Made by a program: the position numbers and the translations under genes
The notes under the pieces: model-generated
Told to the model about the DNA's origin: nothing
What the model saw: the letters and a program-made list of their open reading frames with translations, nothing else
Databases searched by the model: none
Shown here: positions 6,446 through 59,404 of the stretch, one piece after another
Position numbering within the stretch: position 1 is the stretch's first letter
Layout of the letters: the number at the start of each line of letters is the position of its first letter
Assembly (NCBI GenBank): GCA_965644295.1
Contig: CBFFRP010000445.1
Location: forward strand, 1 to 64,000
Source of the DNA: Paraphysomonas bandaiensis
Taxonomy: Eukaryota > Protista > Chrysophyceae
Direction of reading: 5' to 3'
Length of the DNA stretch: 64,000 bases

Positions 6446-7013
6446 TTATGTATGGATATATACACAGTGAGTGTATACAGAGAATGTACACGTATACAGC
6501 AGGTTTGGATGGATGTATGTATATGTATACGTTAAGTACTGCTGTTTATGTATAGACCTACACATAATATCTGTACCTATGGACTGTACATACACACACA
6601 CATAATCTAGCCTGTACCTATGGGCTGTACTACCACACACTTATACCTACACATGATCTCTCAAGCATATCTGTACCTATAGACTGTACTAACACACACT
6701 ATGTAGCACTGTGGCACGTACCATACTATGGTACCACACAATATACATGTACATTGTGTTTAACAATTTGCAAACTGAAAAAAATATCTAATATAATCTA
6801 AGAAATAACGGTCCCATATATAGCGTATGGTCGTATGTATATATATGTGTGTATGGATGTATAGAGATGTGTGTATGTGTATATGTATGCATGTATGTAT
6901 GTATGTACCTCTTAGTAGCATAGCATACTCCACATACATACATACACACTATCTCATACATCTCTATTCAATCTCTCATTCATTAACTCACTATATCTCA
7001 TCATTTTCTATCA

Positions 7014-8210
7014 ATGAATTCATCACAATCACCTCCTCCATCCCCCTCAAATCTCCATATAGGAGATACAAGCACACACACACATACACACACACATACA
7101 CATACAGACACTCATCAAACACTCTCATCCACTCAATCAACAAACTTACCACGATATTTAAATAAAACACTTTCATCACTTAGTTCTAATTCACAAAATA
7201 ATGAAACTGAAAGAATTAAACGTTCCTTTCAAACAGGAAATTATTATTCTATTAAGAAACTACCATCAAGATTACAGTGTGGTTTAATAGAAGAATCACG
7301 TAAACATCTTATTGCACAATCATTAGCAATGAAACCACAATATACATATAAAGCAAATACAATTAATCATTATTTTACACCATTATCATATGCACGTACA
7401 GAATATAATAAAATTGCTGAAAATGAACGGGAAGAAGCACAATTTCAACGGTTAACAACATTAAGTTTTTCAAGGAAACCATTTACATATGCATCTTCTC
7501 GTGTTCGTTTGAAGAATGAGGATATCTTCGGTAATGAGGAGTATAAGTATCCAGTATTAGGTCCTGGCCATGGTAAGGTTGATCTCTCAAATTATGTTCG
7601 TAAAGATTTTACGGACGCCGGTAAGATGATTCATGGACCCTTTTTTGTTGTCGGCCGGCGGCGAGGAGAACGGGAGGTGCCCAGGGATCAAGTGGAGATT
7701 TGGTCCAAAGAGATATTCGACCTACTATCTACAGACTGGGGACATCTGCGTTTTAGCATCCGTTTCACTGGAGACGATGAACTTGTGGTTTCGTTTGACA
7801 CAGCCCTGTTGGAGTCGGATGGGCAGATCAAGGACAGAGCTTTGGCTCGTTATATGGGCCATCTCGCACGCCACGGAGTGGCAGCCGAGCGAAGATTGCG
7901 TAAACGTGGCGACCGATGGCGGGTGCTTGAGTGGGAAGATGCGACTCCTGGAGGCTCTGAAGTGAAGCAGGTGCTGGTATTCTCATTTTACGCTCCCTGG
8001 TATACTGCAGGGCATGTGCCAGCTAGAAAAACAGCCGCCACTGCTGAGAGGACCCGCACAAGGAGAACGGCGAGAGCTCAACGAGAAAGCCTATCATCCC
8101 CAGTACTAGTGCCAACTTTATCGTTGTCCCAATCTCAACAGCCTCTTCCTGCCATACCTCAAGGAGACTCTCCGACCACCTCTCAGGAGCCATCCAGTCG
8201 ATCGAAGTAG
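7014..8210 (+). CDS. Hypothetical protein (398 aa, single ORF)
   Basis: Long open frame divergent from ARL1, with the AT-rich 5' to GC-balanced 3' gradient seen in other genes here; no family recognised. Confidence 0.7.
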   Translation: MNSSQSPPPSPSNLHIGDTSTHTHTHTHTHTDTHQTLSSTQSTNLPRYLNKTLSSLSSNSQNNETERIKRSFQTGNYYSIKKLPSRLQCGLIEESRKHLIAQSLAMKPQYTYKANTINHYFTPLSYARTEYNKIAENEREEAQFQRLTTLSFSRKPFTYASSRVRLKNEDIFGNEEYKYPVLGPGHGKVDLSNYVRKDFTDAGKMIHGPFFVVGRRRGEREVPRDQVEIWSKEIFDLLSTDWGHLRFSIRFTGDDELVVSFDTALLESDGQIKDRALARYMGHLARHGVAAERRLRKRGDRWRVLEWEDATPGGSEVKQVLVFSFYAPWYTAGHVPARKTAATAERTRTRRTARAQRESLSSPVLVPTLSLSQSQQPLPAIPQGDSPTTSQEPSSRSK

Positions 8211-15827: not shown

Positions 15828-16676
15828 TTAACCAGGTAGTCTATGTAATATCGCAGACATGGTTTTTTGAACCTCCTCCATGTTACGTTGCAAACCATCC
15901 ATGTTGCGTTGCAAACCATCCATGTTGCGTTGCAAACCATCCATGTTGTGTTGTAACACACCAATGTCACCTCGTACACCCTCCATGTTGTGTTGCAGGG
16001 CTGCAATATCGCCTTGCATCTGCTGTATCTGAGGTAAACATGAGCTTGTATTATACCAAAGAATGTTATGAAAATAATATAGCAAATACCGTAGGCATGG
16101 GAGTAATAGCATTAACCCCACATAGATAAGCCATATGCGCTTGGCATTGATTGGCCACTACAGTGTACACAAGTGCAATCAGCTGATCTGATGCTTGTGG
16201 ACAGACTCTACGAATTCCTGAGAGTTTTATGATATAACAGTAACAAAAATCTGTTTATCTCACATACTTGAACAAAAGGCACTCTTAATAGTATCATCTG
16301 CATTGCTATATAGCGAGGTGTCCATTGTGATCATGTGGGTTCGCTGTGTGTCTACTGCGGCATGTAAGGCATTGATGTCAGCATCTGATAGTCTTCGAAA
16401 CATTCTCTCCGTATACTCTCCTGCAATCTGCGGACCTCTATCTCCATCTCTCTCATCTCCTCTCGCTCTACCTCTACGCATTCTTCTTCTCTTAAGTGGT
16501 GGGCTGCGTATAGTGTGACTCTGACTGGGAGGAACACACGCATGTCTCTGTCCAAGTGTCGAATCTATTGGCATACATGTGGATACTTCATAGTGACCCT
16601 TCAAGATACCAGGTTGAATTGAAGTCAAATCAATGACCTCCACAGCAACAAACTTCATCGTATAGAGAGACTTCAT
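15828..16676 (-). CDS. Array gene copy 1: three-exon ~245-aa protein with basic patch and C-terminal heptad (21-nt) coiled-coil repeat
   Basis: Exons 16676-16268, 16217-16090, 16028-15828 join in frame through two GT-AG introns; C-terminus (Q-H/R-NMDGL)n; true start codon uncertain. Confidence 0.65.
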
Positions 16677-16849: not shown

Positions 16850-17128
16850 TCAGACATTTGAAGGTGATAAAGAAGATATGAAACCTGTGGGTTTTGCGAC
16901 ATTTTTTAATGCTTTAAACTTGCGCCTTAATTGGTCGCTTTCTCTTGAGTAATTCACTTTCTCATTATAGAGGACAGTGAGGGCATCCCAATCGCTTTGC
17001 CCTAATGGAAGCAACTCCTCAACCAAATCTAGGAGTACAGAGACGTCCGCTGAGGAATATGAGGCACCTCTGCCTGATTTATCCTTCCTCATTTTCTTCT
17101 TTGTTACCTTAGTAATAGTATTTGCCAT
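16850..17128 (-). pseudogene. Myb/trihelix-like (DUF6818-like) domain fragment, unit 2
   Basis: GRGASYSSADVSVLLDLVEELLPLGQSDWDAL...RESDQLRRKFKALKNVAKPTG; downstream exon lost at the microsatellite. Confidence 0.6.
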
Positions 17129-17585
17129 TATATTCATTTGACCTCTATGAATAGTCATTTGTGTAGTGCAATTTATGTGCACAGTTTTGGAGGTCACACT
17201 TGTAGTATATGGTTGTAGTATACATGTATTTTCGAACATTTGTTACACACTTTGTGACACGTCACAAAATACTACAGAGGGGTTTTGGAAGTCACCCAGT
17301 GTATATGGTGGAATATCGATCTGGGGTATATATAGGAGATAGATATAGATATTGGAGGGTGTTTATAGAAATTGGGGGATGTACTGTATATACCATAGAC
17401 AGGGATATATAAGTATATGGGTGTATGGTATACATAGATAGAGATATACAGAGATGGAGAGGTGATGATATAGGGATGTGTATATGTGTATGTCGTTGCG
17501 CGTGATAGTTATGTTCTGCATATTATTCACTCTCTCACTTCACATTCTAATAATCACAACATTCTTCGTACTACAACTAAGCTTT

Positions 17586-17940: not shown

Positions 17941-18771
17941 CATTACACACACATACACACATATATATCTAAACAACACACATTCCGACAGTGTGGCTAT
18001 AGTGTAGGCTCGCGTATACACCACATAAAACACCGAGTTTTTGCGCTGATTCTACCACCCACCTATCCGTGCGTGTAACAACGTAGCCAACCACATAGAT
18101 AACGCACAGATTCTGTTGCCGGCCGTGTTCACCTTCGCTAATATTACGCAAGATTTCTCATAGCTATGCATGTCTTTTATATATGTCATTCGCACAGATT
18201 CTAGTAGGGCAATGATGTTTACCTCGCCATCACCTAACAAAGATTATGCGAAGCTTCTCGTGACAATGCATGACTCATTATAGGCATGGAATCTCAAGGT
18301 TTTGTCGTAATCCTACAAGGACTATGCAAGTATAGTTTAGATTTTAGATCTAGCTCGATCTTGCTTGGCGTCGACACACAAAGAATACGCCAGAATTTTA
18401 TTAACAATATATACATTATATATCACTTAATTTAATCAGCACTTGCGCTTTATTTTTATTTGGCCACGTTCTCGGAATGGGGTAATGCTGATGAATTTTT
18501 ATTATAATTGTAGTAATCAACCGAAAGTAAAACTTACTTAATCTTCAGTTACTTACTTCTAAGCTTAAACATACCAAATATTGATAAACCCTAGCCCTGT
18601 CACATCATTATTATAAAAACCACTCTCCAATAAATCCAAACCGAATGCTGCCAACAATAATATTCCAAACAAAATCAATAAGTGACTTGCAATTATTACA
18701 GTAATTTACAGATAACCGACATGCTAATATAAATCAGCACCGTTGTCGGCTCATCCCCTAACTGCCATACA

Positions 18772-19641
18772 TTAACCAGGTAGTCTATGTAATATCGCAG
18801 ACATGGTTTTTTGAACCTCCTCCATGTTACGTTGCAAACCATCCATGTTGCGTTGCAAACCATCCATGTTGCGTTGCAAACCATCCATGTTGTGTTGCAA
18901 ACCATCCATGTTGTGTTGTAACACACCAATGTCACCTCGTACACCCTCCATGTTGTGTTGCAGGGCTGCAATATCGCCTTGCATCTGCTGTATCTGAGGT
19001 AAACATGAGCTTGTATTATACCAAAGAATGTTATGATAATAATATAGCAAATACCGTAGGCATGGGAGTAATAGCATTAACCCCACATAGATAAGCCATA
19101 TGCGCTTGGCATTGATTGGCCACTATAGTGAACACAAGTGCAATCAGCTGATCTGATGCTTGTGGACAGACTCTACGAATTCCTGAGAGTTTTATGATAT
19201 AACAGTAACAAAAATCTGTTTATCTCACATACTTGAACAAAAGGCACTCTTAATAGTATCATCTGCATTGCTATATAGCGAGGTGTCCATTGTGATCATG
19301 TGGGTTCGCTGTGTGTCTACTGCGGCATGTAAGGCATTGATGTCAGCATCTGATAGTCTTCGAAACATTATCTCCGTATACTCTCCTGTAATCTGCGGAC
19401 CTCTATCTCCATCTCTCTCATCTCCTCTCGCTCTACCTCTACGCATTCTTCTTCTCTTAAGTGGTGGGCTGCGTATAGTGTGACTCTGACTGGGAGGAAC
19501 ACACGCATGTCTCTGTCCAAGTGTCGAATCTATTGGCATACATGTGGATACTTCATAGTGACCCTTCAAGATACCAGGTTGAATTGAAGTCAAATCAATG
19601 ACCTCCACAGCAACAAACTTCATCGTATAGAGAGACTTCAT
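18772..19641 (-). CDS. Array gene copy 2 (three exons, one extra heptad)
   Basis: Exons 19641-19233, 19182-19055, 18993-18772; splice sites and frame conserved. Confidence 0.65.
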
Positions 19642-19711: not shown

Positions 19712-20067
19712 TATGTACATACATACATACATACATACATACATACATACATACATACATACATACATACATACATACATACATACGTACATACATACAT
19801 ACATACATACATACATACATACATACATACATACATACATACATACATACATACATACATACATACATACCTACATACATACCTACATACATACATACAT
19901 ACATACATACATACATACATACATACATACATACATACATACATACATACATACATACATACATACATACATACATACATACATACATACATACATACAT
20001 ACATACATACATACATACATACATACATACATACATACATACATACATACATACATACATACATACA
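19712..20067. repeat. (TACA)n microsatellite at unit 2/3 junction
   Basis: About 350 bp tetranucleotide run. Confidence 0.97.
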
Positions 20068-20221
20068 TCCATCCGTATCGGCAGTCAGCATCTTAGTTTT
20101 CGGAAATATAACGAAGTAAATATTCTATATATTACTGCAATACAACTACGGCTGAAATACAGATAATTGTTGACTCAATATAAGAGGCATCTATGAACAA
20201 AAATGTACGAAGGATGCCGAT

Positions 20222-20627
20222 ATGTCTGCAGGTTCATCTGCTATCTCAGATTTCTCTTCAATAAGCGATCCAATGTCGGAAGCTGAATCAAGTAACGCGA
20301 AACCGCAATCGTCCATCTCCTCGCTTTGGATCTCCTGGAAAAACATTATCAGACATTTGAAGGTGATAAAGAAGATATGAAACCTGTGGGTTTTGCGACA
20401 TTTTTTAATGCTTTAAACTTGCGCCTTAATTGGTCGCTTTCTCTTGAGTAATTCACTTTCTCATTATAGAAGACAGTGAGGGCATCCCAATCGCTTTGCC
20501 CTAATGGAAGCAACTCCTCAACCAAATCTAGGAGTACAGAGACGTCCGCTGAGGAATATGAGGCACCTCTGCCTGATTTATCCTTCCTCATTTTCTTCTT
20601 TGTTACCTTAGTAATAGTATTTGCCAT
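20222..20627 (-). pseudogene. Myb/trihelix-like (DUF6818-like) fragment, unit 3
   Basis: Same ORF as 16850-17128; splicing gives KPTG-DP, after which the sequence appears deleted or frameshifted. Confidence 0.6.
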
Positions 20628-21084
20628 TATATTCATTTGACCTCTATGAATAGTCATTTGTGTAGTGCAATTTATGTGCACAGTTTTGGAGGTCACACTT
20701 GTAGTATATGGTTGTAGTATACATGTATTTTCGAACATTTGTTACACACTTTGTGACACGTCACAAAATACTACAGAGGGGTTTTGGAAGTCACCCAGTG
20801 TATATGGTGGAATATCGATCTGGGGTATATATAGGAGATAGATATAGATATTGGAGGGTGTTTATAGAAATTGGGGGATGTACTGTATATACCATAGACA
20901 GGGATATATAAGTATATGGGTGTATGGTATACATAGATAGAGATATACAGAGATGGAGAGGTGATGATATAGGGATGTGTATATGTGTATGTCGTTGCGC
21001 GTGATAGTTATGTTCTGCATATTATTCACTCTCTCACTTCACATTCTAATAATCACAACATTCTTCGTACTACAACTAAGCTTT

Positions 21085-22270: not shown

Positions 22271-23140
22271 TTAACCAGGTAGTCTATGTAATATCGCAGA
22301 CATGGTTTTTTGAACCTCCTCCATGTTACGTTGCAAACCATCCATGTTGCGTTGCAAACCATCCATGTTGCGTTGCAAACCATCCATGTTGTGTTGCAAA
22401 CCATCCATGTTGTGTTGTAACACACCAATGTCACCTCGTACACCCTCCATGTTGTGTTGCAGGGCTGCAATATCGCCTTGCATCTGCTGTATCTGAGGTA
22501 AACATGAGCTTGTATTATACCAAAGAATGTTATGATAATAATATAGCAAATACCGTAGGCATGGGAGTAATAGCATTAACCCCACATAGATAAGCCATAT
22601 GCGCTTGGCATTGATTGGCCACTATAGTGAACACAAGTGCAATCAGCTGATCTGATGCTTGTGGACAGACTCTACGAATTCCTGAGAGTTTTATGATATA
22701 ACAGTAACAAAAATCTGTTTATCTCACATACTTGAACAAAAGGCACTCTTAATAGTATCATCTGCATTGCTATATAGCGAGGTGTCCATTGTGATCATGT
22801 GGGTTCGCTGTGTGTCTACTGCGGCATGTAAGGCATTGATGTCAGCATCTGATAGTCTTCGAAACATTATCTCCGTATACTCTCCTGCAATCTGCGGACC
22901 TCTATCTCCATCTCTCTCATCTCCTCTCGCTCTACGTCTACGCATTCTTCTTCTCTTAAGTGGTGGGCTGCGTATAGTGTGACTCTGACTGGGAGGAACA
23001 CACGCATGTCTCTGTCCAAGTGTCGAATCTATTGGCATACATGTGGATACTTCATAGTGACCCTTCAAGATACCAGGTTGAATTGAAGTCAAATCAATGA
23101 CCTCCACAGCAACAAACTTCATCGTATAGAGAGACTTCAT
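22271..23140 (-). CDS. Array gene copy 3 (three exons)
   Basis: Exons 23140-22732, 22681-22554, 22492-22271; splice sites and frame conserved. Confidence 0.65.
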
Positions 23141-23210: not shown

Positions 23211-23977
23211 TATGTACATACATACATACATACATACATACATACATACATACATACATACATACATACATACATACATACATACATACATACATACATA
23301 CATACATACATACATACATACATACATACATACATACATACATACATACATACATACATACATACATACATACATACATACATACATACATACATACATA
23401 CATACATACATACATACATACATACATACATACATACATACATACATACATACATACATACATACATACGTACATACATACATACATACATACATACATA
23501 CGTACATACATACATACATACATACATACATACATACATACATACATACATACATACATACATACATACATACGTACATGGGAATGGAGCAGTAGTCGTC
23601 AGAACACGATATCTATTCTATTCCTACACGTTGATTTGGAACACTCTACATGTCTGTATGTTTATGATACTGTACAGCAGTACTGTGTATGAGTGCATAG
23701 GTTTCAGTTGTGTAGTCTAGTCTACTACATACATACATACATACATACATACATACATACATACATACATACATGCATACATACATACATACATACATAC
23801 ATACATACATACATACATACATACATACATACATACATACATACATACATACATACATACATACATACATACATGCATACATACATACATACATACATAC
23901 ATACATACATACATACATACATACATACATACATACATACATACATACATACATACATACATACATACATACATACA
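23211..23977. repeat. Two (TACA)n microsatellites (23211-23575 and 23724-23977)
   Basis: Tetranucleotide runs. Confidence 0.97.
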
Positions 23978-24102
23978 TGCATGTTACTCTTGTCTAGATA
24001 GATGCATATGTCTGCTATATATACACATACACATACACAACTAGATCACACTGATCTCACTATATAAACACATCAAATAATTCATTAAATTCATCTTTAA
24101 TT

Positions 24103-26522: not shown

Positions 26523-26777
26523 GTAATCACTTCAACGAACAGACTCCTGTGTTCTTAATCAATAAGTGTAGACGTGTAGCCCACACTATTCCTAGTTAGG
26601 AGAACTGTTTTGTGCTTCTTGCTCTCTGTCCGCTAGCGTAATGTATAAATTATGTTGCTGGCTCTATCCCGTGTGGGAGAATGGTCTATGTTATGTGATT
26701 CTCCATATCTTTTCCCACTCGATAGAATACATCTTATATCCAGATAGACATGTCTTGTAGCATTAAGAACCTTACCA

Positions 26778-27886
26778 ATATATTGAAAGTCTTATTATTA
26801 GCAATAGGCGTTAAAAACCTGCACCAACTTAGTAGCTAGATGAATGCTAGTCAAACTAGATAGACCTCTACCTGTAACTATTTAACGCTACGGAAGCTGC
26901 TTGTGCGTCGCCGCAAGCACCAAGGTGTGACCACTTCCGCTCTGAGTTCTTAAGGTGAACATCCCGGATGCTTGACTTCAGCAGGCAGCCCAATACCCCG
27001 GTTACCCTTCTGGTGGGCCCTGTCCCGGATGCCTGTTTATTCGTCAGGGCCCAATGACGTCTACACAATTGACACTTATTGATGTCTCTTGTACCACACA
27101 AGCATTCGGCTATGAGTGGGCAGAAGACTATCTGCTGACTATGTTTGCGGCTCACGTTAGTTTCCCAGAGAGAATCTCTCCGGTACTTATCCCCCAGAAC
27201 ACCACAAAAAAGTTGAGGGAGAACCTTACCTGAAATAAATTCGACTCTACCATTCACAATGTGAACCCTCTAGTCAGATATTACTATCATATGATGTACA
27301 AGAAGACATATTGATGATAGTACTGTTTTGACGAAGATCTACCCGATGAGGAGAGGTTATATGGTTTCACTCCCTCAACAAAGTCGGACTCGCACCTTTT
27401 CGTGGTGTTCTGGGGGATAAGTACCGGAGAGATTCTCTCTGGGAAACTAACGTGAGCCGCAAACATGGTCAGCAGATATTCTTCTGCCCACGCATATAGC
27501 CGAATGCTTGTGTGGTACAAGGGACACCAATAAGTGTCACTTGTGTAGACGTCTTTGGGCCCTGACGAATAAACAGGCATCCGGGAATGGGCCCACCTCA
27601 AGGGCATCCGGGACAGGGCCCACCAGAAGGGTAACCGGGGTATTGGGCTGCCTGCTGAAGTCAAGCATCCGGGATGTTCACCTTAAGAACTCAGAGCGGA
27701 AGTGGTCACACCTTGGTGCTTGCGGCGACGCACAAGCAGCTTCCGTAGCGTTAAATAGTAGGATAAAAAAAGTGTGTACTGATTAGTTACAGGTAGAGGT
27801 CTATCTAGTTTATCTAGCATTCATCTAGCTACTAAGTTGGTGCAGGTTTTTAACGCCTATTGCTAATAATAAGACTTTCAATATAT
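26778..27886. mobile_element. Foldback element: two ~430-480-bp inverted arms around a ~190-bp spacer
   Basis: 26778-27208 is the near reverse complement of 27403-27886; arm ends match the 13864-14288 insert. Confidence 0.85.
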
Positions 27887-27929
27887 ATGGTTTCACTGCT
27901 GCCGATTGGTTTGGTTGTCATGTGATCTT

Positions 27930-34726: not shown

Positions 34727-36284
34727 CTAAAGCCTCGATTTGAATCTGGGGGTACGCTGCACTTCCGCCTGCACAAATCGGCTCAATCACTGCATATAAC
34801 ACGTTCTCTTCGCCATACCTTAATGATACCATGAGGCTCATCGATGGGGTAGAATATATCAGGTTTTCCAGTATGGTCCGCATTCTTGATTCCATATTTC
34901 TCAAGAGGGAAGACAAGGTTGTGAATATTCGGCATGTATATGCTAACCTACACCGCAATTCACCGTTACTAGCTCCGAACTTCTGCTTAAAATAGTAAAT
35001 CTACGTGTCTGCTACAATACCTTGTTGATACTGGGCTGTTGCTGGATGACCTTTTCTGCCATGATGTACAGGGTTTCCTGCACTGACTTGCTGTAAACTC
35101 CTGTGTCAGCAGGTCCGACAATAGTGTTCAAGAGAGAAGTCTCCACGTCGTTGTAGATCTACGGTTTCACATATCAAACGCATAGCAAGCACACATTTGC
35201 AAGCACCTTGTCAAAAGGGGTGGATGGGTTAGCCACTGCAGATGCATCGTACTCCCACTCCGCCTCTGTCAATACAGCATTAGTATATACCTCCGTCACA
35301 TTCACTTCCAGAGAGGATAGCACGTACACAAGTCAGTGAACCGATTGCATATACTTAATAGTACTGTGAGGGAATAATAACATACCAATGGAAGTAGCCA
35401 GAATACGGTCAGAATCTTCAGGTAGCGACGTGTACTGGCACTTGTGGAAGTTGGTGAAACCTATAATCGTAAAAAAGATTATAACCACTGTCGACCGTAC
35501 AACAACGTATATTTATATTATGTTCTCGTGACGGCAGTACCTGACTGTGTGGTCTTGAGAACCGTCAGTCCACGAACGCCAGAGCGAACAGAGAAAGCAA
35601 AGCCCCCTGTAGACAATACCACATCACTGGACTATACATACAGCATGAGGATTATGTTGCACTCACTTCCAGGTGAAGAAGCAGTGCCAGTTACAACTGT
35701 GTAAGGCACACTGGGTCCCACCCTCTTGAAGGCATGAGAATGGGGTCTCATTCGACCATTAGAGTCTGGGCAGACCACTCGCTCCCATGAATCTCTCTTG
35801 ATATTAACAGAGACCTATGATCCATCGTATCAATAAGAAAAGCCATATCACTCCATCAGTACATACAAACCTTATTGACGATATCAGGATACTCTGTCAT
35901 AAAGTGACGTGCGACAATGATTCCAAATTGTTCGATTGATTGAAAACTATTTTTTTTTCCCAAACAGTAAATTGTATTTTTACATGTGTCGGTTGGCACC
36001 ACATTCGAGTTATCACCCGTTAAAAATGCAGATGACATATTGGGTCCCTGTATATAATTACTTACAACTATACAGTGTGTATATATAACACGTACCTCAA
36101 GAAGGACCTCTACTGATACTTGAATAATGTTATGGTTACCTGTACGGGGGCACCGGATGACCTGTAATATATATCCATATATATGGAATGTGATAAATTG
36201 GAATGTTTATTGCAATAAATGTTGTACCTTAACCATCCTTACACGGCCTTTGCCATGTGTGTTAAATCCAAGTCGAATAGACAT
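34727..36284 (-). CDS. UOX: Urate oxidase (uricase), peroxisomal
   Basis: HGKGRVRMVK, GDNSNVVPTDTCKNT, LTVLKTTQS, YSKSVQETLY, LPNIH, PIDEPHGIIK; spliced last exon AEVQRTPRFKSRL* (PTS1). Confidence 0.92.
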
Positions 36285-48296: not shown

Positions 48297-48360
48297 TACA
48301 TACATACATACATACATACATACATACATACATACATACATACATACATACATACATACA

Positions 48361-48394
<34 letters not shown>

Positions 48395-48430
48395 CGTACA
48401 TACATACATACATACATACATACGTACATA
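48297..48430. repeat. (TACA)n microsatellite
   Basis: Tetranucleotide run abutting the inverted array-gene copy. Confidence 0.95.
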
Positions 48431-48850
48431 CGTACATACGTACAGCAGTGTCCGTTGACTGAGTGTGAAGTGGGGTGGTCTTGGACAGAAGCGTATATAC
48501 TTCTTTAGATGAAGTCTCTCTATACGATGAAGTTTGTTGCTGTGGAGGTCATTGATTTGACTTCAATTCAACCTGGTATCTTGAAGGGTCACTATGAAGT
48601 ATCCACATGTATGCCAATAGATTCGACACTTGGACAGAGACATGCGTGTGTTCCTCCCAGTCAGAGTCACACTATACGCAGCCCACCACTTAAGAGAAGA
48701 AGAATGCGTAGAGGTAGAGCGAGAGGAGATGAGAGAGATGGAGATAGAGGTCCGCAGATTGCAGGAGAGTATACGGAGATAATGTTTCGAAGACTATCAG
48801 ATGCTGACATCAATGCCTTACATGCCGCAGTAGACACACAGCGAACCCAC

Positions 48851-49165
48851 ATGATCACTATGGACACCTCGCTATATAGCAGTGCACATATTCGTAGCGT
48901 CTGTTCACAAGCATCAGATCAGCTGATTGCACTTGTGTTCACTATAGTGGCCAATCAATGTCAAGCGCATATCAGTTTTCTATGTGGAATTAATGCTATT
49001 ACCTCCACCGACGGCAATAGCATTAACCCCACATAGATAAGCCATATGCGCTTGACATTGATTGGCCACTATAGTGAACACAAGTGCAATCAGCTGATCT
49101 GATGCTTGTGAACAGACGCTACGAATATGTGCACTGCTATATAGCGAGGTGTCCATAGTGATCAT
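48851..49165. other. Long hairpin: 122-bp perfect arms plus imperfect inner stem, about 15-nt loop
   Basis: 48851-48972 is the reverse complement of 49044-49165; inner tctatgtgg..ttaatgctatt pairs with aatagcattaa..ccacataga. Confidence 0.93.
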
Positions 49166-49267
49166 ATGGGTGTGCCGTAAATAGGGGATGAGCCGACAAC
49201 GATGCTGAATTATAATCAATAAGCATGTCTTACTGCATCAATTGCAAGTCACTTATTGATTTTGTTT

Positions 49268-49587
49268 GGAATATATCAGTGCCTTACACGCCTTAATAGA
49301 CACACACCGAATATGTTGTAACGCACCAATATCATGTCGCATCTCCTCAGTAACACCAACGTAACGTTGAGGAGATGCGAAATGCTATTGGTGCGTTACA
49401 ACACAACATGGATGAGGTTCAAAAACCGGAATATATCAGTGCCTTACACGCCTTAATAGACACACACCGAATATGTTGTAACGCACCAATATCATGTCGC
49501 ATCTCCTCAGTAACACCAGCGTAACGTTGAGGAGATGCGAAATGCTATTGGTGCGTTACAACGCAACATGGAGGAGGCTAAAAAACG
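49268..49587. repeat. 160-bp tandem duplication, each copy containing a ~90-nt hairpin
   Basis: tgttgtaacgcaccaata..tcgcatctcctca / tgaggagatgcga..tattggtgcgttacaaca at 49314-49403 and about 49474-49562. Confidence 0.9.
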
Positions 49588-50621
49588 CAATACTATATAC
49601 ACTGCCCGGTTAATGTATGGCAGTTAGGGGATGAGCCGACAATGGTGCTGAATTATAATTTATAAGCCATTAGCATGTTGGTTTTCTGTAAATTACTGCA
49701 ATAATTTCAAGTCACTTATTGATTGGCAGCATTCGGTTCGGATTTATTGAAGAGTGGATTTTATAATAAGAATGTGATGATTAAACCAAGTAATGTATAG
49801 ATTTTTATTAAAATTCCGGCGTATTCTTTGTGTATCGGCGCCAAGCAAGCTCTAGCTAGATCTAAACTCTAAACTATACTTGCATAGTCATATGACATTA
49901 CGAGAAACCCCGCGCATTTTCTAGGGAAGGGGGGGGCGGCCAATACCACGCTAGTCCTATAATGAGGCTTTAATGGGCACGACAAACTCCGTGTAATTAC
50001 AAAGAGGATGAGTCTTGCATAACTGTGAGAAATCCTGCGTAATCTTAGCGAAGGTGAACGCGGGTAGGGCGGAAACAGAATCTGCGCGTGATCTATGTGG
50101 TTCGCTACGTTGGTACATGCACTGATAGGCATCAGCTCTTATTACAGATAGAAGGAGCATATTTCTTTCCACTGGAGGAACGAAGAAGTGAAATATTATT
50201 GTGTACGTAAGAGTTGATATTCATGCATCCATGAGAAATGTGATCGATGAACATAAGCATGCGGTAGATGCGTACAGGCTCATGTGTATATTGTTATTAT
50301 TGCGTTAGTTTGTTAATGAATAATATAAAATTAATTTGGACGTGACCATTGAGGGATTATCATATTATCATCATAGCCTTTTGTCTTGTGACATATTCGC
50401 AAAAGTCTACAAATTGTGTTTGTCTAAATGAATCGTAGTAGTCGTCAAACAATTCAGAAGCGAAGGTGTACAGACCAATATCCGGAACATTAAAATTAAC
50501 TGTTACCTTCACAGAATGCTGTATTCTGGTTCGGTACGTCACATATTCTGTAATTTCTCGCTCCACCACGAAAACATTTCATCAATGCAGTAACTACATT
50601 TATATTTGTCATCTATATCTT

Positions 50622-51336
50622 CTATATCTTCTCGTTACTGGCGCCTATAATGACCACGAGAGCCAAAGCATTAGCAAATACATGCACACAAAAGAGGTGT
50701 ACTGCCACTACGCGTTTGTAAACCATATCTCTTTCCGGAGTGAATGGCTCCGTTGGATTAAGAGAGAGGCAAGAGCAGGAAGAACCAGTTTCGTTAGTCT
50801 CTCTTATGCATAGTTCTGGGTCAGTCACCACGTCAGCATTAGAGGCGCTACTATTAATCTCTTTCATTTTGTTTTCATATTCATTCGTCGATTCATTGCT
50901 CTTGTGTGCAGAGGGCATATAAGGCTTGCGTTTAGTCTGATAATAATACATCGTCTAGAACAAGATTATCAATATGACAACATATATATCAAACTATACT
51001 TACTTCATTTGTAATAAATATAACACCTATTATCCCAAGACCACCAAACCATATATATATATATATAGTTTCTAAACTACTTGCAACATAACTACCATAT
51101 ACAATAGCAGTAAACACTGCAATATAATCCATATATCTAGCAATACGAGTAAAACGTGGTTTATACCAATGCCATACAGATGTTCCATATACAAGAATTA
51201 ATACAATGAATAGACCATAACGTTTATATATCAGTCCAATAATTGCAGATATTAATAATAAATGAGAGCTAATGACTAATGGTCGTGCAAGATGATCTGG
51301 TATAATGACATCATCATTATCATGTTGTTGATACAT
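50622..51336 (-). CDS. Hypothetical multi-pass membrane protein
   Basis: Exons 51336-51004 and 50954-50622 in frame; about 5 hydrophobic segments; TSVWHWYKP...RYMDY. Confidence 0.7.
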
Positions 51337-52660
51337 GATAATATATGTAGTTATTCTATATAGATGAGTATGAGATGTGTATGTATGTATGTAGAGTTCG
51401 TGATGTTTAATAGAGTGAGAGTCCAGTCATGTACATGTATGTACAGTTCATATGAGATTGTGGGGTTCTAGATTTGTATTACTCTGTATAATATGGTTTT
51501 AGGGAATGAGAAAAGTGAAAAATAAGGGGATTCTAGAGAAGAGAGTGCGAAAATATAAGGTTTTGCGGGTATTTATGTATATTCGTAGGTGTGCAGGTAC
51601 AATATGTGGGAAATGATATAAAGTGGAGGGTCGGCGGCCACACCCCGAGAGGAGCGGTCACCAAAGTTTTTTGGAGACTCCATACCAAATGGTGTCATCC
51701 GGGGTGAGATATTCAGAGTTGAATTTATTGTACTCAACTGGTAGATTGTAGCTATTTATATACTGTTCAATATACCCAAAGTAAAACGTGGTTTATACCA
51801 ATGCCATACAGATGTTCCATATACAAGAATTAATACAATGAATAGACCATAACGTTTATATATCAGTCCAATAATTGCAGATATTAATAATAAATGAGAG
51901 CTAATGACTAATGGTCGTGCAAGATGATCTGGTATAATGACATCATCATTATCATGTTGTTGATACATGATAATATATGTAGTTATTCTATATAGATGAG
52001 TATGAGATGTGTATGTATGTATGTAGAGTTCGTGATGTTTAATAGAGTGAGAGTCCAGTCATGTACATGTATGTACAGTTCATATGAGATTGTGGGGTTC
52101 TAGATTTGTATTACTCTGTATAATATGGTTTTAGGGAATGAGAAAAGTGAAAAATAAGGGGATTCTAGAGAAGAGAGTGCGAAAATATAAGGTTTTGCGG
52201 GTATTTATGTATATTCGTAGGTGTGCAGGTACAATATGTGGGAAATGATATAAAGTGGAGGGTCGGCGGCCACACCCCGAGAGGAGCGGTCACCAAAGTT
52301 TTTTGGAGACTCCATACCAAATGGTGTCATCCGGGGTGAGATATTCAGAGTTGAATTTATTGTACTCAACTGGTAGATTGTAGCTATTTATATACTGTTC
52401 AATATACCCAAAATATAAAAAATATGTACTGTATGCATTTATGTATATCCGTAGGTGTGTAGGTACAATACGTGGGAAATGATATAAAGTGGAGGGTCGG
52501 CGGCCACACCCCGAGAGGAGCGGTCACCTAAGTTTTTTGGAGACTCCGTACCAAATGGTGTCATCCGGGGTGAGATATTCAGAGTTGAATTTATTGTACT
52601 CATCTGGTAGATTGTAGCTACTTATATACTGTTTAACATACCCAAAATATAAAAAATATG
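51149..52660. repeat. 632-bp tandem duplication of the membrane gene 5' end and promoter, plus a third partial copy
   Basis: 51149-51780 repeats at 51781-52412; about 52440-52660 repeats the distal part; produces truncated ORF 51756-51968. Confidence 0.93.
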
Positions 52661-58626: not shown

Positions 58627-59404
58627 TCACTTCTTCGTTCCTCCAGTGGAAAGAAATCTGTGGAAGGCACTATATGCTCCTTCTAAGTCGAATATTAGTT
58701 GTCTTGCTTCCTCGTCATCTATCGTGTCTGATGCTCGCAATTCATTCAGTTTCTGAAGCCATAGACGGAGTTTGACTAGACCCTCAAAATCACTAGCCAG
58801 GCCCTGCACCCTCGTCAAGGATGACATCAAGTCAGATATAAGAGGTTGCACTTCGTCCACAGCACGTTGATCTAGCTTTAATGCATCCATTGTTGTTATG
58901 AAATACTGCACAGTTTCAGCCACTACGACATTTTCGCCTCTGTCATCATGAGAGACATGCATTACAGTGGCAGGTACACCAGCTCTAAGCAGACGATCAT
59001 ATGCACGAGGACAATCCACATCAAACTCTCGCATAAATACTTCCGCACTAGTAATCATTCCACCTGTAATAAGAGCTGACTCCGTACTTTTAAACTGTTG
59101 TATTAAACGAGTACATGATTCCGCATATGCAGTAGCAGATACAGCATCTCTGCTATATGCCGCCTCAAGAGATTCAGTCGCTTTAATGATCTGTGTCATA
59201 TATGAGCTCATAGGATCATATCATACACTAGATACACAGTACCGTATAGAGATCACACAATTCTTCATGCCTGCGCCGTTCACTCGAATCATTAAATAAC
59301 TTCACTTCACTCATACGAGGACGAGTGAGAGATCCAGTTGATAGAGAAACTGATCGTGTGGGATAGTTGATTGCGGTCTCATATGAGGGAGGAGCTTCTG
59401 ACAT
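58627..59404 (-). CDS. VPS28: ESCRT-I subunit VPS28
   Basis: Exons 59404-59243 and 59190-58627; EVKLF...ELCDLYTIIKATESLEAAYSRD, CPRAYDRL, VAETVQYFITTMDALKL, RQLIFDLEGAYSAF. Confidence 0.95.

Follow-up and report, generated by a model that had tools for sequence, protein, structure and literature searches.

A fold-back derivative of a tandemly amplified gene in Paraphysomonas bandaiensis as a candidate endogenous hairpin-RNA locus

Introduction

Does a rearranged gene copy in the genome of Paraphysomonas, a marine golden-alga flagellate, produce hairpin RNAs against the gene from which it descends, or is it an inert remnant of rearrangement? In Drosophila and in plants, hairpin-RNA loci born from their own targets are well documented and keep in check genes that are young, amplified and in some cases selfish. 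Here, we analyzed such a copy within 64,000 nucleotides of Paraphysomonas bandaiensis DNA (the window; positions 1 to 64,000 of contig CBFFRP010000445.1, hereafter C445). The locus contains three fold-backs, and its sequence makes it a credible candidate for a locus of the hairpin-RNA (hpRNA) type.

Results

The putative target is a small gene repeated three times in tandem at 15.8-23.1 kb on the minus strand. Copy 1 (15828-16676) has three exons, separated by introns of 50 and 61 nt; copies 2 and 3 lie at 18772-19641 and 22271-23140. The array-type gene is expressed, a spliced mRNA for a protein of 238 aa (P0002) being present in the MMETSP Paraphysomonas transcriptome. Pfam analysis of pieces of the array protein gave nothing above threshold, with coiled-coil noise on exon 3 alone, and a query of the ESM Atlas with P0002 returned no usable structural neighbour. 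Its three copies are a young tandem amplification; the gene is an orphan, evolves fast (dN/dS 0.4-0.9) and varies in its number of heptads. Many members of the family are already broken: the member on C298 has lost its start codon, that on C432 is frameshifted and that on C66 has lost its N-terminus.

A sequence-only reading of the window had placed an inverted copy of this gene, rearranged into fold-backs, about 25 kb from the array. Both the distance (23.3 kb to 48.4 kb) and the inverted orientation were confirmed. A (TACA)n microsatellite (48297-48444, no strand assigned) lies directly upstream. It is followed on the plus strand, which carries all features of the locus described below, by a promoter-proximal and 5'UTR-like region (48445-48508) and by a copy of exon 1 that lacks the final 30 nt (48509-48889, 98-99% identity to the array). 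The near-identity of the 5' part and upstream end to the array, also claimed earlier, was confirmed: positions 48421-48889, matching array upstream sequence and exon 1, are 98.3% identical, and the 74 nt preceding the start codon of the array gene recur at the fold-back locus with 100% identity. Positions 48890-49002 are the counterpart of array exon 2. A TACA or TGTA microsatellite occurs upstream of every family member, in either polarity. An inversion between flanking inverted microsatellites was considered as the cause of the flipped TACA polarity and rejected, both on logic and because the two polarities are found among family members.

Self-comparison of the locus revealed a long fold-back (48838-49178) with two 166-nt arms that are 93% complementary. 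The left arm (48838-49003) is in sense orientation and consists of exon 2 preceded by the terminal 52 nt of the exon 1 copy. After a gap of 9 nt (49004-49012), the right arm (49013-49178) runs antisense to the array mRNA and carries the exon 1-end and exon 2 segments in inverted order (49016-49126 and 49127-49171). Perfect arms of 122 bp, drawn from exon 2 and the end of exon 1, had been described correctly (48851-48972 with 49044-49165), whereas the hairpin measures approximately 341 nt and not 315 nt. The arms are imperfect at the base and near the loop, where about 30 nt of each arm next to the gap are only partly paired in the fold, and the centre is asymmetric. The RNA folding that had been suggested as a check yielded a minimum free energy of -286.2 kcal/mol, compared to a shuffle mean of -93.4 (z -34.7). 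Stability and structure of the long fold-back are far beyond chance, and its near-perfect stem and short loop, formed on one strand, are of the kind expected for an hpRNA locus.

Both arms lack the identical 80 nt, namely the final 30 nt of exon 1 and the 50-nt intron 1, an in-frame loss whose junction in the left arm lies at 48889/48890. The arms are indeed exonic and intron 1 is gone, as the earlier reading had it, but a clean intron deletion did not hold up, since 30 nt of exon were lost as well. The loss is a genomic deletion and not the trace of a cDNA, and it is older than the palindrome. A processed pseudogene (retrocopy) was rejected, because the 80-nt loss combines exon and intron with boundaries that, as far as examined (BLAST placement, 2-nt slide), fit no GT-AG, and because the upstream non-transcribed flank and the microsatellite have been retained. 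Likewise, the locus does not qualify as a foldback transposon or MITE: its arms are gene exons, and the 62.6-Mb assembly contains only two copies of the palindrome.

The 3' half is built differently. A displaced 3'UTR fragment of the family (49182-49274, 77% identity to the array), of which a second duplicate lies at 49625-49724, is followed by two tandem units of 160 nt. Unit 1 (49268-49426) contains a 37-nt piece resembling the end of exon 1 (49275-49311) and then antisense and sense exon-3-like arms that form a hairpin (49314-49403). Unit 2 (49428-49586) is 97% identical to unit 1 and contains the hairpin 49475-49562. Each hairpin is about 90 nt long, with a nearly perfect stem of about 36 bp and a minimum free energy of about -57 kcal/mol (z about -10). 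Their relation to exon 3 had been recognized before; the exon-3-related part and the 3'UTR match the array at only about 76-79%, and no perfect 21-mer is common to the small hairpins and the array. The 3' arm shares approximately 79% identity with exon 3 of the array and includes a patch of 28 nt at 96%, and 21-mers that begin at 49314 and at 49474, in the 5' arms, pair near-perfectly with that exon (1 mismatch and 1 G:U). Fold-backs of about 70-300 nt with two target-like arms are what an origin of miRNAs by inverted duplication produces, and the small hairpins have this form. An Rfam search gave merely sub-threshold, generic miRNA-hairpin matches and no known RNA family. The remainder comprises the end of exon 3 and the 3'UTR (49556-49777), which match the array at only 76% identity and form the old part of the locus, and a portion (49774-50117, no strand assigned) of a dispersed repeat of about 500 nt. 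This repeat has dozens of copies genome-wide and is also found downstream of the array and of the C288 and C298 genes.

The locus is a paralogue of the array gene that no longer encodes the family protein and has kept the upstream region and the 5' half, with three fold-backs. It is a mosaic of two ages, the 5' half being 97-100% identical to the array and the 3' half about 76%. The 5' half nests inside the clade of the array and C298, and the 3'UTR (77% to the array) diverges more than that of any other family member.

Short-spacer palindromes are a recognised class of assembly artefact, and a chimeric or missed-adapter read could in principle have created the long fold-back. We give this explanation almost no credence. 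The whole fold-back locus is also present on contig C301, at 98% identity and with the same asymmetric centre; the palindromes differ at 7 positions across 341 nt. This recurrence indicates that the palindrome is no assembly artefact, and the imperfect arms, as well as the continuation of the locus into older rearranged sequence, speak against it too. At 48905/49111, a paired double change (C-G to T-A) leaves the arms matched, and two further differences break stem pairing. No array is present near the hairpin locus on C301. The two contigs also share an open frame of 175 aa (48509-49036), which begins in the exon 1 copy and extends into the palindrome. It might encode a shortened, N-terminal product that lacks the coiled coil and could, for instance, act as a dominant-negative partner of the array protein. 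Although the frame is open on both contigs, such a role is very improbable: 7 of the 8 nucleotide differences within it are non-synonymous, which argues that there is no protein constraint, and its C-terminus is read from the palindrome loop.

Searches of a public protein collection with three open frames of the locus recovered no product of it. The 175-aa frame matched nothing beyond the array-type MMETSP cluster and a single Tara scaffold (L029), with no exact record; the right-arm frame and the frame spanning the tandem units gave no candidates. L029 joins C301-type hairpin sequence to array-copy-1 sequence through only about 39 shared nt; it carries the 80-nt deletion, retains intron 2 and is possibly chimeric. 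Its value as a clean evolutionary intermediate was downgraded, as a 39-nt join is compatible with a de Bruijn chimera. In scans of JGI metagenomes, the pattern for the palindrome centre was unmatched, and so was the control pattern from exon 2, which deprives the blank of weight.

Production of small RNAs from a hairpin depends on the machinery encoded in the same genome. The presence of Dicer and Argonaute, another check that had been proposed, was established: we identified a Dicer-like open frame of 1679 aa on C377 (Helicase_C, Dicer_dimer and two RNase III domains), two Argonaute genes (ArgoN-PAZ-Piwi) and two RdRP loci. The arms of the long fold-back derive from, and are complementary to, an expressed protein-coding gene of the same organism. 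The complementarity expected of the antisense arm was borne out, with 34/146, 56/146 and 56/146 of its 21-mers pairing perfectly with array copies 1, 2 and 3, respectively. The pattern of arm mismatches is less suggestive. On the sense strand, there is 1 G.U against 7 A.C, and the antisense strand folds better (-302 versus -285 kcal/mol), so there is no signature of RNA-level selection on the sense strand.

Fold-back mutation is common in this genome and recurrent in the array gene family. Each of the three subfamilies has a cognate fold-back derivative (C445/C301, C432 and C218). The arms on C432 are about 930 nt long and 99% matched, and the fold-back on C218 comprises 230 nt; on the gene-sense strand, the arm mismatches of the C218 hairpin are 10 G.U versus 1 A.C. 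Three strong fold-backs were found in approximately 190 kb of non-family DNA, a sample that was not random. Compared to this local background, about 0.25-0.8 independent events would be expected in the approximately 15 kb of family sequence, where 4 were counted; the expectation is rough, given the non-random sample. Fold-back duplication at the DNA level, through template switching, is their most likely origin in the locus studied here.

Discussion

We propose that the locus is an endogenous hpRNA/endo-siRNA locus derived from its own target and silencing the array mRNAs, and we put the probability of this reading at roughly 0.45. The retained array-type promoter would drive transcription of the locus, and its RNA would fold into the 341-nt hairpin with the 122-bp perfect stem and into two hairpins of about 36 bp. 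The Dicer-like enzyme could then process these stems to small RNAs about 21 nt in length. Right-arm strands loaded into Argonaute would pair perfectly with the exon 1 end and exon 2 of array mRNAs and lower their level; such silencing might also carry a selective value. The stem-breaking changes between C445 and C301, the unfavourable mismatch pattern on the sense strand, the absence of a locus product from the matches in the public protein collection and the hairpin locus on C301 with no array all count against this proposal, and mutation alone could account for the structure.

There is a considerable chance, if short of an even one, that the locus is instead a decaying pseudogene, situated in a region that is prone to rearrangement and flanked by microsatellites, and leaves the array unaffected. 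Template switching during replication would then have left its scars in the form of the fold-backs, the 80-nt deletion, the two tandem units of 160 nt and the displaced piece of 3'UTR, and the near-identity of the 5' half would reflect ordinary gene conversion with an array 25 kb distant. Fold-backs are frequent in the genome, hence a purely mutational origin without selection would suffice. Relaxed protein constraint, stem changes that show no G.U bias on the sense strand, the broken family members and the lack of a locus product among the matches in the public protein collection are all consistent with such decay. However, siRNAs would be the default expectation where a perfect stem of 122 bp follows an intact copy of an active promoter and the cell has Dicer, Argonaute and RdRP. 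The excess of fold-back events in the family over the rough, non-randomly sampled expectation is likewise not foreseen by mere decay, and the part of the locus that was recently refreshed is the hairpin that matches the target.

The earlier reading had gone further and suggested a possible driver/suppressor system. In its strong form, the array would be a selfish amplifying element and the hairpin locus its selected, linked RNAi suppressor, an arms race like that of Dox and Nmy/Tmy in Drosophila simulans. The concept is established in Drosophila (PMC10292708; PMC10317233). The young, tandemly amplified and fast-evolving orphan array would fit it, as would a hairpin derivative of matching age in each subfamily and a hairpin locus that looks old yet has recently been refreshed with array-type sequence. 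Nevertheless, we found no support for it and regard it as unlikely: the array protein shows no sign of drive, toxicity or mobility and has neither a Pfam family nor an informative structural neighbour, the C301 hairpin has no linked array, and every objection to the hpRNA proposal applies here as well. A related idea, a recurrent conflict between the gene family and RNAi in which each subfamily acquires its own hairpin antidote locus and the one on C445 is an old suppressor re-armed by gene conversion with the new array, is similarly improbable; if true, it would give Dox and Nmy/Tmy a counterpart in a free-living protist.

For the preferred reading, a silencing hpRNA locus, the family offers a compact and directly testable case: the array of three copies is expressed, a hairpin copy linked to it has the same promoter, and other subfamilies contribute two more hairpins of differing ages. 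If silencing is absent, the locus still documents how frequently genes are remodelled by fold-back duplication in this genome. To our knowledge, no target-derived endogenous hairpin-RNA locus has been described in a chrysophyte, and literature searches on such loci, which were not aimed at chrysophytes, returned no chrysophyte case.

Young plant MIRNA genes reportedly arise via inverted duplication of their target genes. The small hairpins resemble them as fold-backs of about 90 nt with both arms related to a target exon, and one arm contains a 21-mer with plant-like complementarity. In contrast to young MIRNA genes, the stems of about 36 bp are nearly perfect and hence more siRNA-like, and they are conserved on two contigs only. 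In maize, inverted duplications of the Mu killer type silence transposons. Mu killer, too, is a fold-back duplicate of a repeated sequence, acting as a heritable silencing trigger for a whole family; the Paraphysomonas target is a small, cellular-looking gene and not a transposase, and the locus is a candidate silencer of it.

Further parallels are the inverted repeats of Phytophthora (e.g. pin-IR2758), which per Mb give rise to more small RNAs than any other source and yield 21-nt RNAs, as do several gene families (PMC3804510). Both hosts are stramenopiles and both genomes contain inverted repeats predicted to form hairpin RNAs, although the gene families differ and small RNAs were sequenced in Phytophthora, whereas genome sequence is considered here. 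Another close parallel is with the Drosophila hpRNA/endo-siRNA loci, such as Nmy and Tmy, whose targets in D. simulans are the Dox family (PMC10292708, PMC10317233). As in these, a long inverted repeat with near-perfect arms has originated from its own target gene, the target belongs to a young, amplified and fast-evolving family, hairpin units are tandemly duplicated, and hairpins have arisen repeatedly for different subfamilies. Unlike Nmy and Tmy, the Paraphysomonas locus resides in a unicellular chrysophyte, is known from its sequence and faces a target with no sign of selfishness; and it retains the promoter and exon 1 of that target and shares a contig with the array, at a distance of 25 kb.

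Array gene, protein and family

The assembly searched comprised 62.6 Mb in 669 contigs, with the window on contig C445. Queries were single exons, the open frame at 48509-49036 as found, or P0002, a 238-aa protein from a public Paraphysomonas (MMETSP) transcript; array exons were joined only for translation and for comparison with P0002. The three tandem array copies are minus-strand genes whose start codons are at 16676, 19641 and 23140, and the gene-strand sequence yields a model of three exons separated by GT-AG introns of 50 and 61 nt. P0002 agrees with this model over both exon junctions and differs from the window copies in a few residues and in heptad number; the number of LQxNMDG 7-residue repeats also varies among the array copies. 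Over 94% of the query, the spliced product matches the MMETSP transcript at 88% identity; a cluster mate of that transcript carries taxon id 36769, Paraphysomonas. Paraphysomonas is a colourless chrysophyte. Marine metagenome contigs (Tara and others) contain the array unit at 97-99.6% identity, indicating an oceanic habitat for this species or one very closely related to it. No Pfam family matched the array protein, the ESM Atlas search gave no usable neighbour and a word-indexed protein search returned only two clusters; judged by these searches the protein is an apparent orphan. It has a C-terminal coiled coil and a basic KRRRM-type stretch, likely a nuclear localisation signal by prediction.

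A 129-aa ORF with a DUF6818/Myb-SANT-like match (E 1.4e-8) lies between the array copies on the minus strand (16850-17239 and 20349-20738), just upstream of the microsatellites that belong to copies 1 and 2. In a wild metagenome contig (ERZ27287676), an array-type gene unit is joined directly to sequence from 58.8-59.2 kb of the window (contig positions 1862-2323 against window 58770-59231, 99.6% identity). This junction may point to another gene arrangement in natural populations, perhaps an ancestral one with a single copy.

Own-genome searches recovered about a dozen family loci in three subfamilies. Subfamily A contains the three array copies and C298, subfamily B two copies on C288 and one on C424, and subfamily C the member on C66. 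For exon 1, dN/dS is 0.4-0.57 between subfamilies (dS about 0.65); for the array against C298, a member whose start codon is gone, it is 0.9. Thus, the family protein is real but fast-evolving, and several members are dead. Between subfamilies, intron 2 (18994-19054 and paralogues) is 93% identical, the 3'UTR (18600-18771 and paralogues) 84-85% and the coding exons 74-80%; the far stronger conservation of intron 2 and the 3'UTR might come from patchy gene conversion or from a non-coding element that is itself conserved. A long TACA or TGTA microsatellite precedes every family member, in either polarity relative to the gene (48297-48444, 19716-20072 and 23215-23982 in the window; also loci L023, L025, L026 and L046).

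Structure of the hairpin locus

The sequence-only reading had described a rearranged array-gene copy with one long and two small fold-backs, and block-mapping against the array recovered all of this structure. Upstream sequence and exon 1 (48421-48889, 98.3% identity to the array) are followed, across an 80-nt gap relative to the array at junction 48889/48890, by exon 2 (48890-49002, 90-92%). Beyond a loop (49004-49012), exon 2 and 45 nt of exon 1 recur inverted, without the same 80 nt (49016-49171, 91-97%). Then come a displaced 3'UTR fragment (49182-49274, 77%), two hairpin units (49268-49586), the exon 3 end with 3'UTR (49556-49777, 76%) and ~340 nt of a dispersed ~500-nt repeat (49774-50117). 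The long hairpin has arms of 166 nt, which include the 122-bp perfect run (dG -286 kcal/mol, z -34.7). The two ~90-nt exon-3-related hairpins (dG about -57, z about -10) sit inside two tandem 160-nt units. In each unit, a 37-nt piece resembling the exon 1 end precedes two exon-3-like arms, the first antisense and the second sense, with a loop between them.

The ~500-nt repeat is non-coding and has dozens of copies (about 50 other places in the genome, 70-85% identical), downstream of most family genes and elsewhere alone, and is perhaps akin to MITEs or SINEs. On the minus strand, converging on the hairpin locus, is a duplicated membrane-protein-like ORF fragment (50989-51336 and 51756-51968) within 632-nt and 234-nt tandem repeats. 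Read-through from these fragments could transcribe the palindrome in antisense.

Intron 1 is indeed missing from the long arm, as had been noticed, but the in-frame loss took the final 30 nt of exon 1 along with the 50-nt intron. At the boundaries examined (BLAST placement and a 2-nt slide) no GT-AG splice site fits, and the upstream flank is kept; this is a genomic deletion and does not stem from a cDNA. Since C288, C424 and C298 retain the segment, its loss is a derived state. In Tara scaffold L029 the same deletion precedes an exon 2, intron 2 and exon 3 of normal form, and this scaffold could be an unfolded ancestor of the hairpin locus. However, it matches the C301 hairpin copy in its 5' part (99.6%), the C301 right arm in exon 2 (100%) and array copy 1 in its 3' part (99.4%), with only ~39 nt, read by eye, common to both sources at the join; it is therefore possibly a short-read assembly chimera. 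Chimeric or not, L029 shows that a lineage with the 80-nt deletion occurs in a wild sample.

The near-identity to the array that had been noticed for the 5' part and upstream end holds. Upstream region, exon 1 and exon 2 are 97-100% identical to the array (C298 there, 84-91%), whereas the 3'UTR has diverged to 77%; C298, C288 and C424 have 84-85%. A young 5' half, of the age of the array amplification, is thus joined to an old 3' half. The old half, which holds the small hairpins, has long been free of constraint, and the two halves meet at the long palindrome. Gene conversion or recombination may recently have written array-type sequence over an old derivative; alternatively, a young 5' half became fused to an old remnant. 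For the small hairpins, divergence is about 6-8% between arms, 3% between the two units and 1.6% between C445 and C301, placing the fold-back before the unit duplication and the latter before the contig split.

A second copy on C301

The palindrome might have been a chimeric-read artefact. The whole 1.7-kb locus is present again at 98% identity on C301, a 38-kb contig, with the same asymmetric palindrome centre and both hairpin units, and we conclude that it is not an artefact. The segment common to C445 and C301 spans only about 3.3-4.5 kb, bounded by microsatellites, and the rest of C301 shows no relation to the window beyond a few repeats and has no array. C301 is thus either a segmental duplicate or another haplotype that has been strongly rearranged. 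Microsatellite polarity differs between the two otherwise identical loci.

The 341-nt hairpin differs at seven positions between the contigs. Two form a matched pair, 48905/49111, which is C-G in C301, the array and L029 and T-A in C445, most simply explained by arm-to-arm gene conversion. Of the others, one creates a G.U pair, two break pairs and two fall in the imperfect centre. In the 175-aa frame (48509-49036), seven of the eight nucleotide differences change the protein, so the frame is not maintained as protein.

Fold-backs in the family and the genome

The structural claim was not only confirmed but also extended: each of the three subfamilies has a fold-back derivative (C445/C301, C432 and C218), and these seem to be of different ages. 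In subfamily A, the C445/C301 locus is 97-100% identical to the nearest gene in its 5' half. In subfamily B, C432 bears a near-perfect 1.9-kb tail-to-tail palindrome of a whole frameshifted member (L024 5191-6102 and 6191-7125; arms ~930 nt, 99% alike; 88-nt centre; dG -1773 kcal/mol). Both arms keep the family upstream region; identity to the tandem gene pair on C288 is 85-86%, with 270 of 940 21-mers perfect. In subfamily C, C218 bears an old 230-nt hairpin built from exon 2 of a C66-like member (L045 3851-4080), 77-85% identical to C66. On the gene-sense strand its arm mismatches are 10 G.U against 1 A.C, and the sense fold (-129 kcal/mol) is 21 kcal/mol better than the antisense (-108), a bias consistent with that strand being under RNA-level constraint or subject to transcription-linked mutation. 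For the long hairpin of C445 the sense-strand bias is reversed (1 G.U against 7 A.C), leaving selection on a sense RNA unsupported.

Three strong fold-backs were found in ~190 kb of non-family DNA, a small, non-random sample. An inverted repeat at 26774-27213 and 27394-27891 (arms ~440-500 nt, 86%; spacer 181 nt) is probably either a fold-back or a transposon-like repeat, with related copies on C301 at 16112-16370 and 35457-35969. C301 also has a 971-nt palindrome, 96% self-complementary and unrelated to the family (6745-7715). On C288, a gene-like 139-aa ORF is duplicated in inverted orientation (L025 3833-4343 and 4614-5125; 93%, 271-nt spacer), 1.5 kb from the tandem family pair. Against this small, non-random background, four independent events in ~15 kb of family sequence amount to roughly a 5- to 15-fold excess.

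Silencing potential

The right arm, which is antisense, offers 146 possible 21-mers; perfect complementarity is seen for 34 of them against array copy 1, for 56 against copy 2 and for 56 against copy 3, and for none against other paralogues. The small hairpins have no perfect 21-mer in common with any family member; those that begin at 49314 and 49474 can pair with exon 3 of the array, each at the cost of a single mismatch and a single G:U. RNAi machinery is encoded in the genome: a 1679-aa Dicer-like ORF (Helicase_C, Dicer dimerisation domain, two RNase III domains), two Argonautes, each with ArgoN, PAZ and Piwi, and RdRP genes on two contigs. In another stramenopile, Phytophthora, no source gives more small RNA per Mb than inverted repeats, and the products are 21-nt RNAs (PMC3804510).

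At the level of sequence, the hairpin locus has all the properties of an hpRNA-type silencer directed at the array, and the genome appears equipped to process such an RNA. That it yields siRNAs affecting the array is our leading, still tentative reading (probability roughly 0.45). It may instead be an inert scar, a serious contender because fold-back duplication is a common mutation in this genome. Within the siRNA reading is nested the stronger proposal of the sequence-only reading, a selected suppressor in a gene-versus-host conflict, which we consider unlikely. To our knowledge, no hpRNA-type locus of such origin has been described in chrysophytes. The kind of system is already known, and the hairpin locus would be a new member of it in a new lineage.
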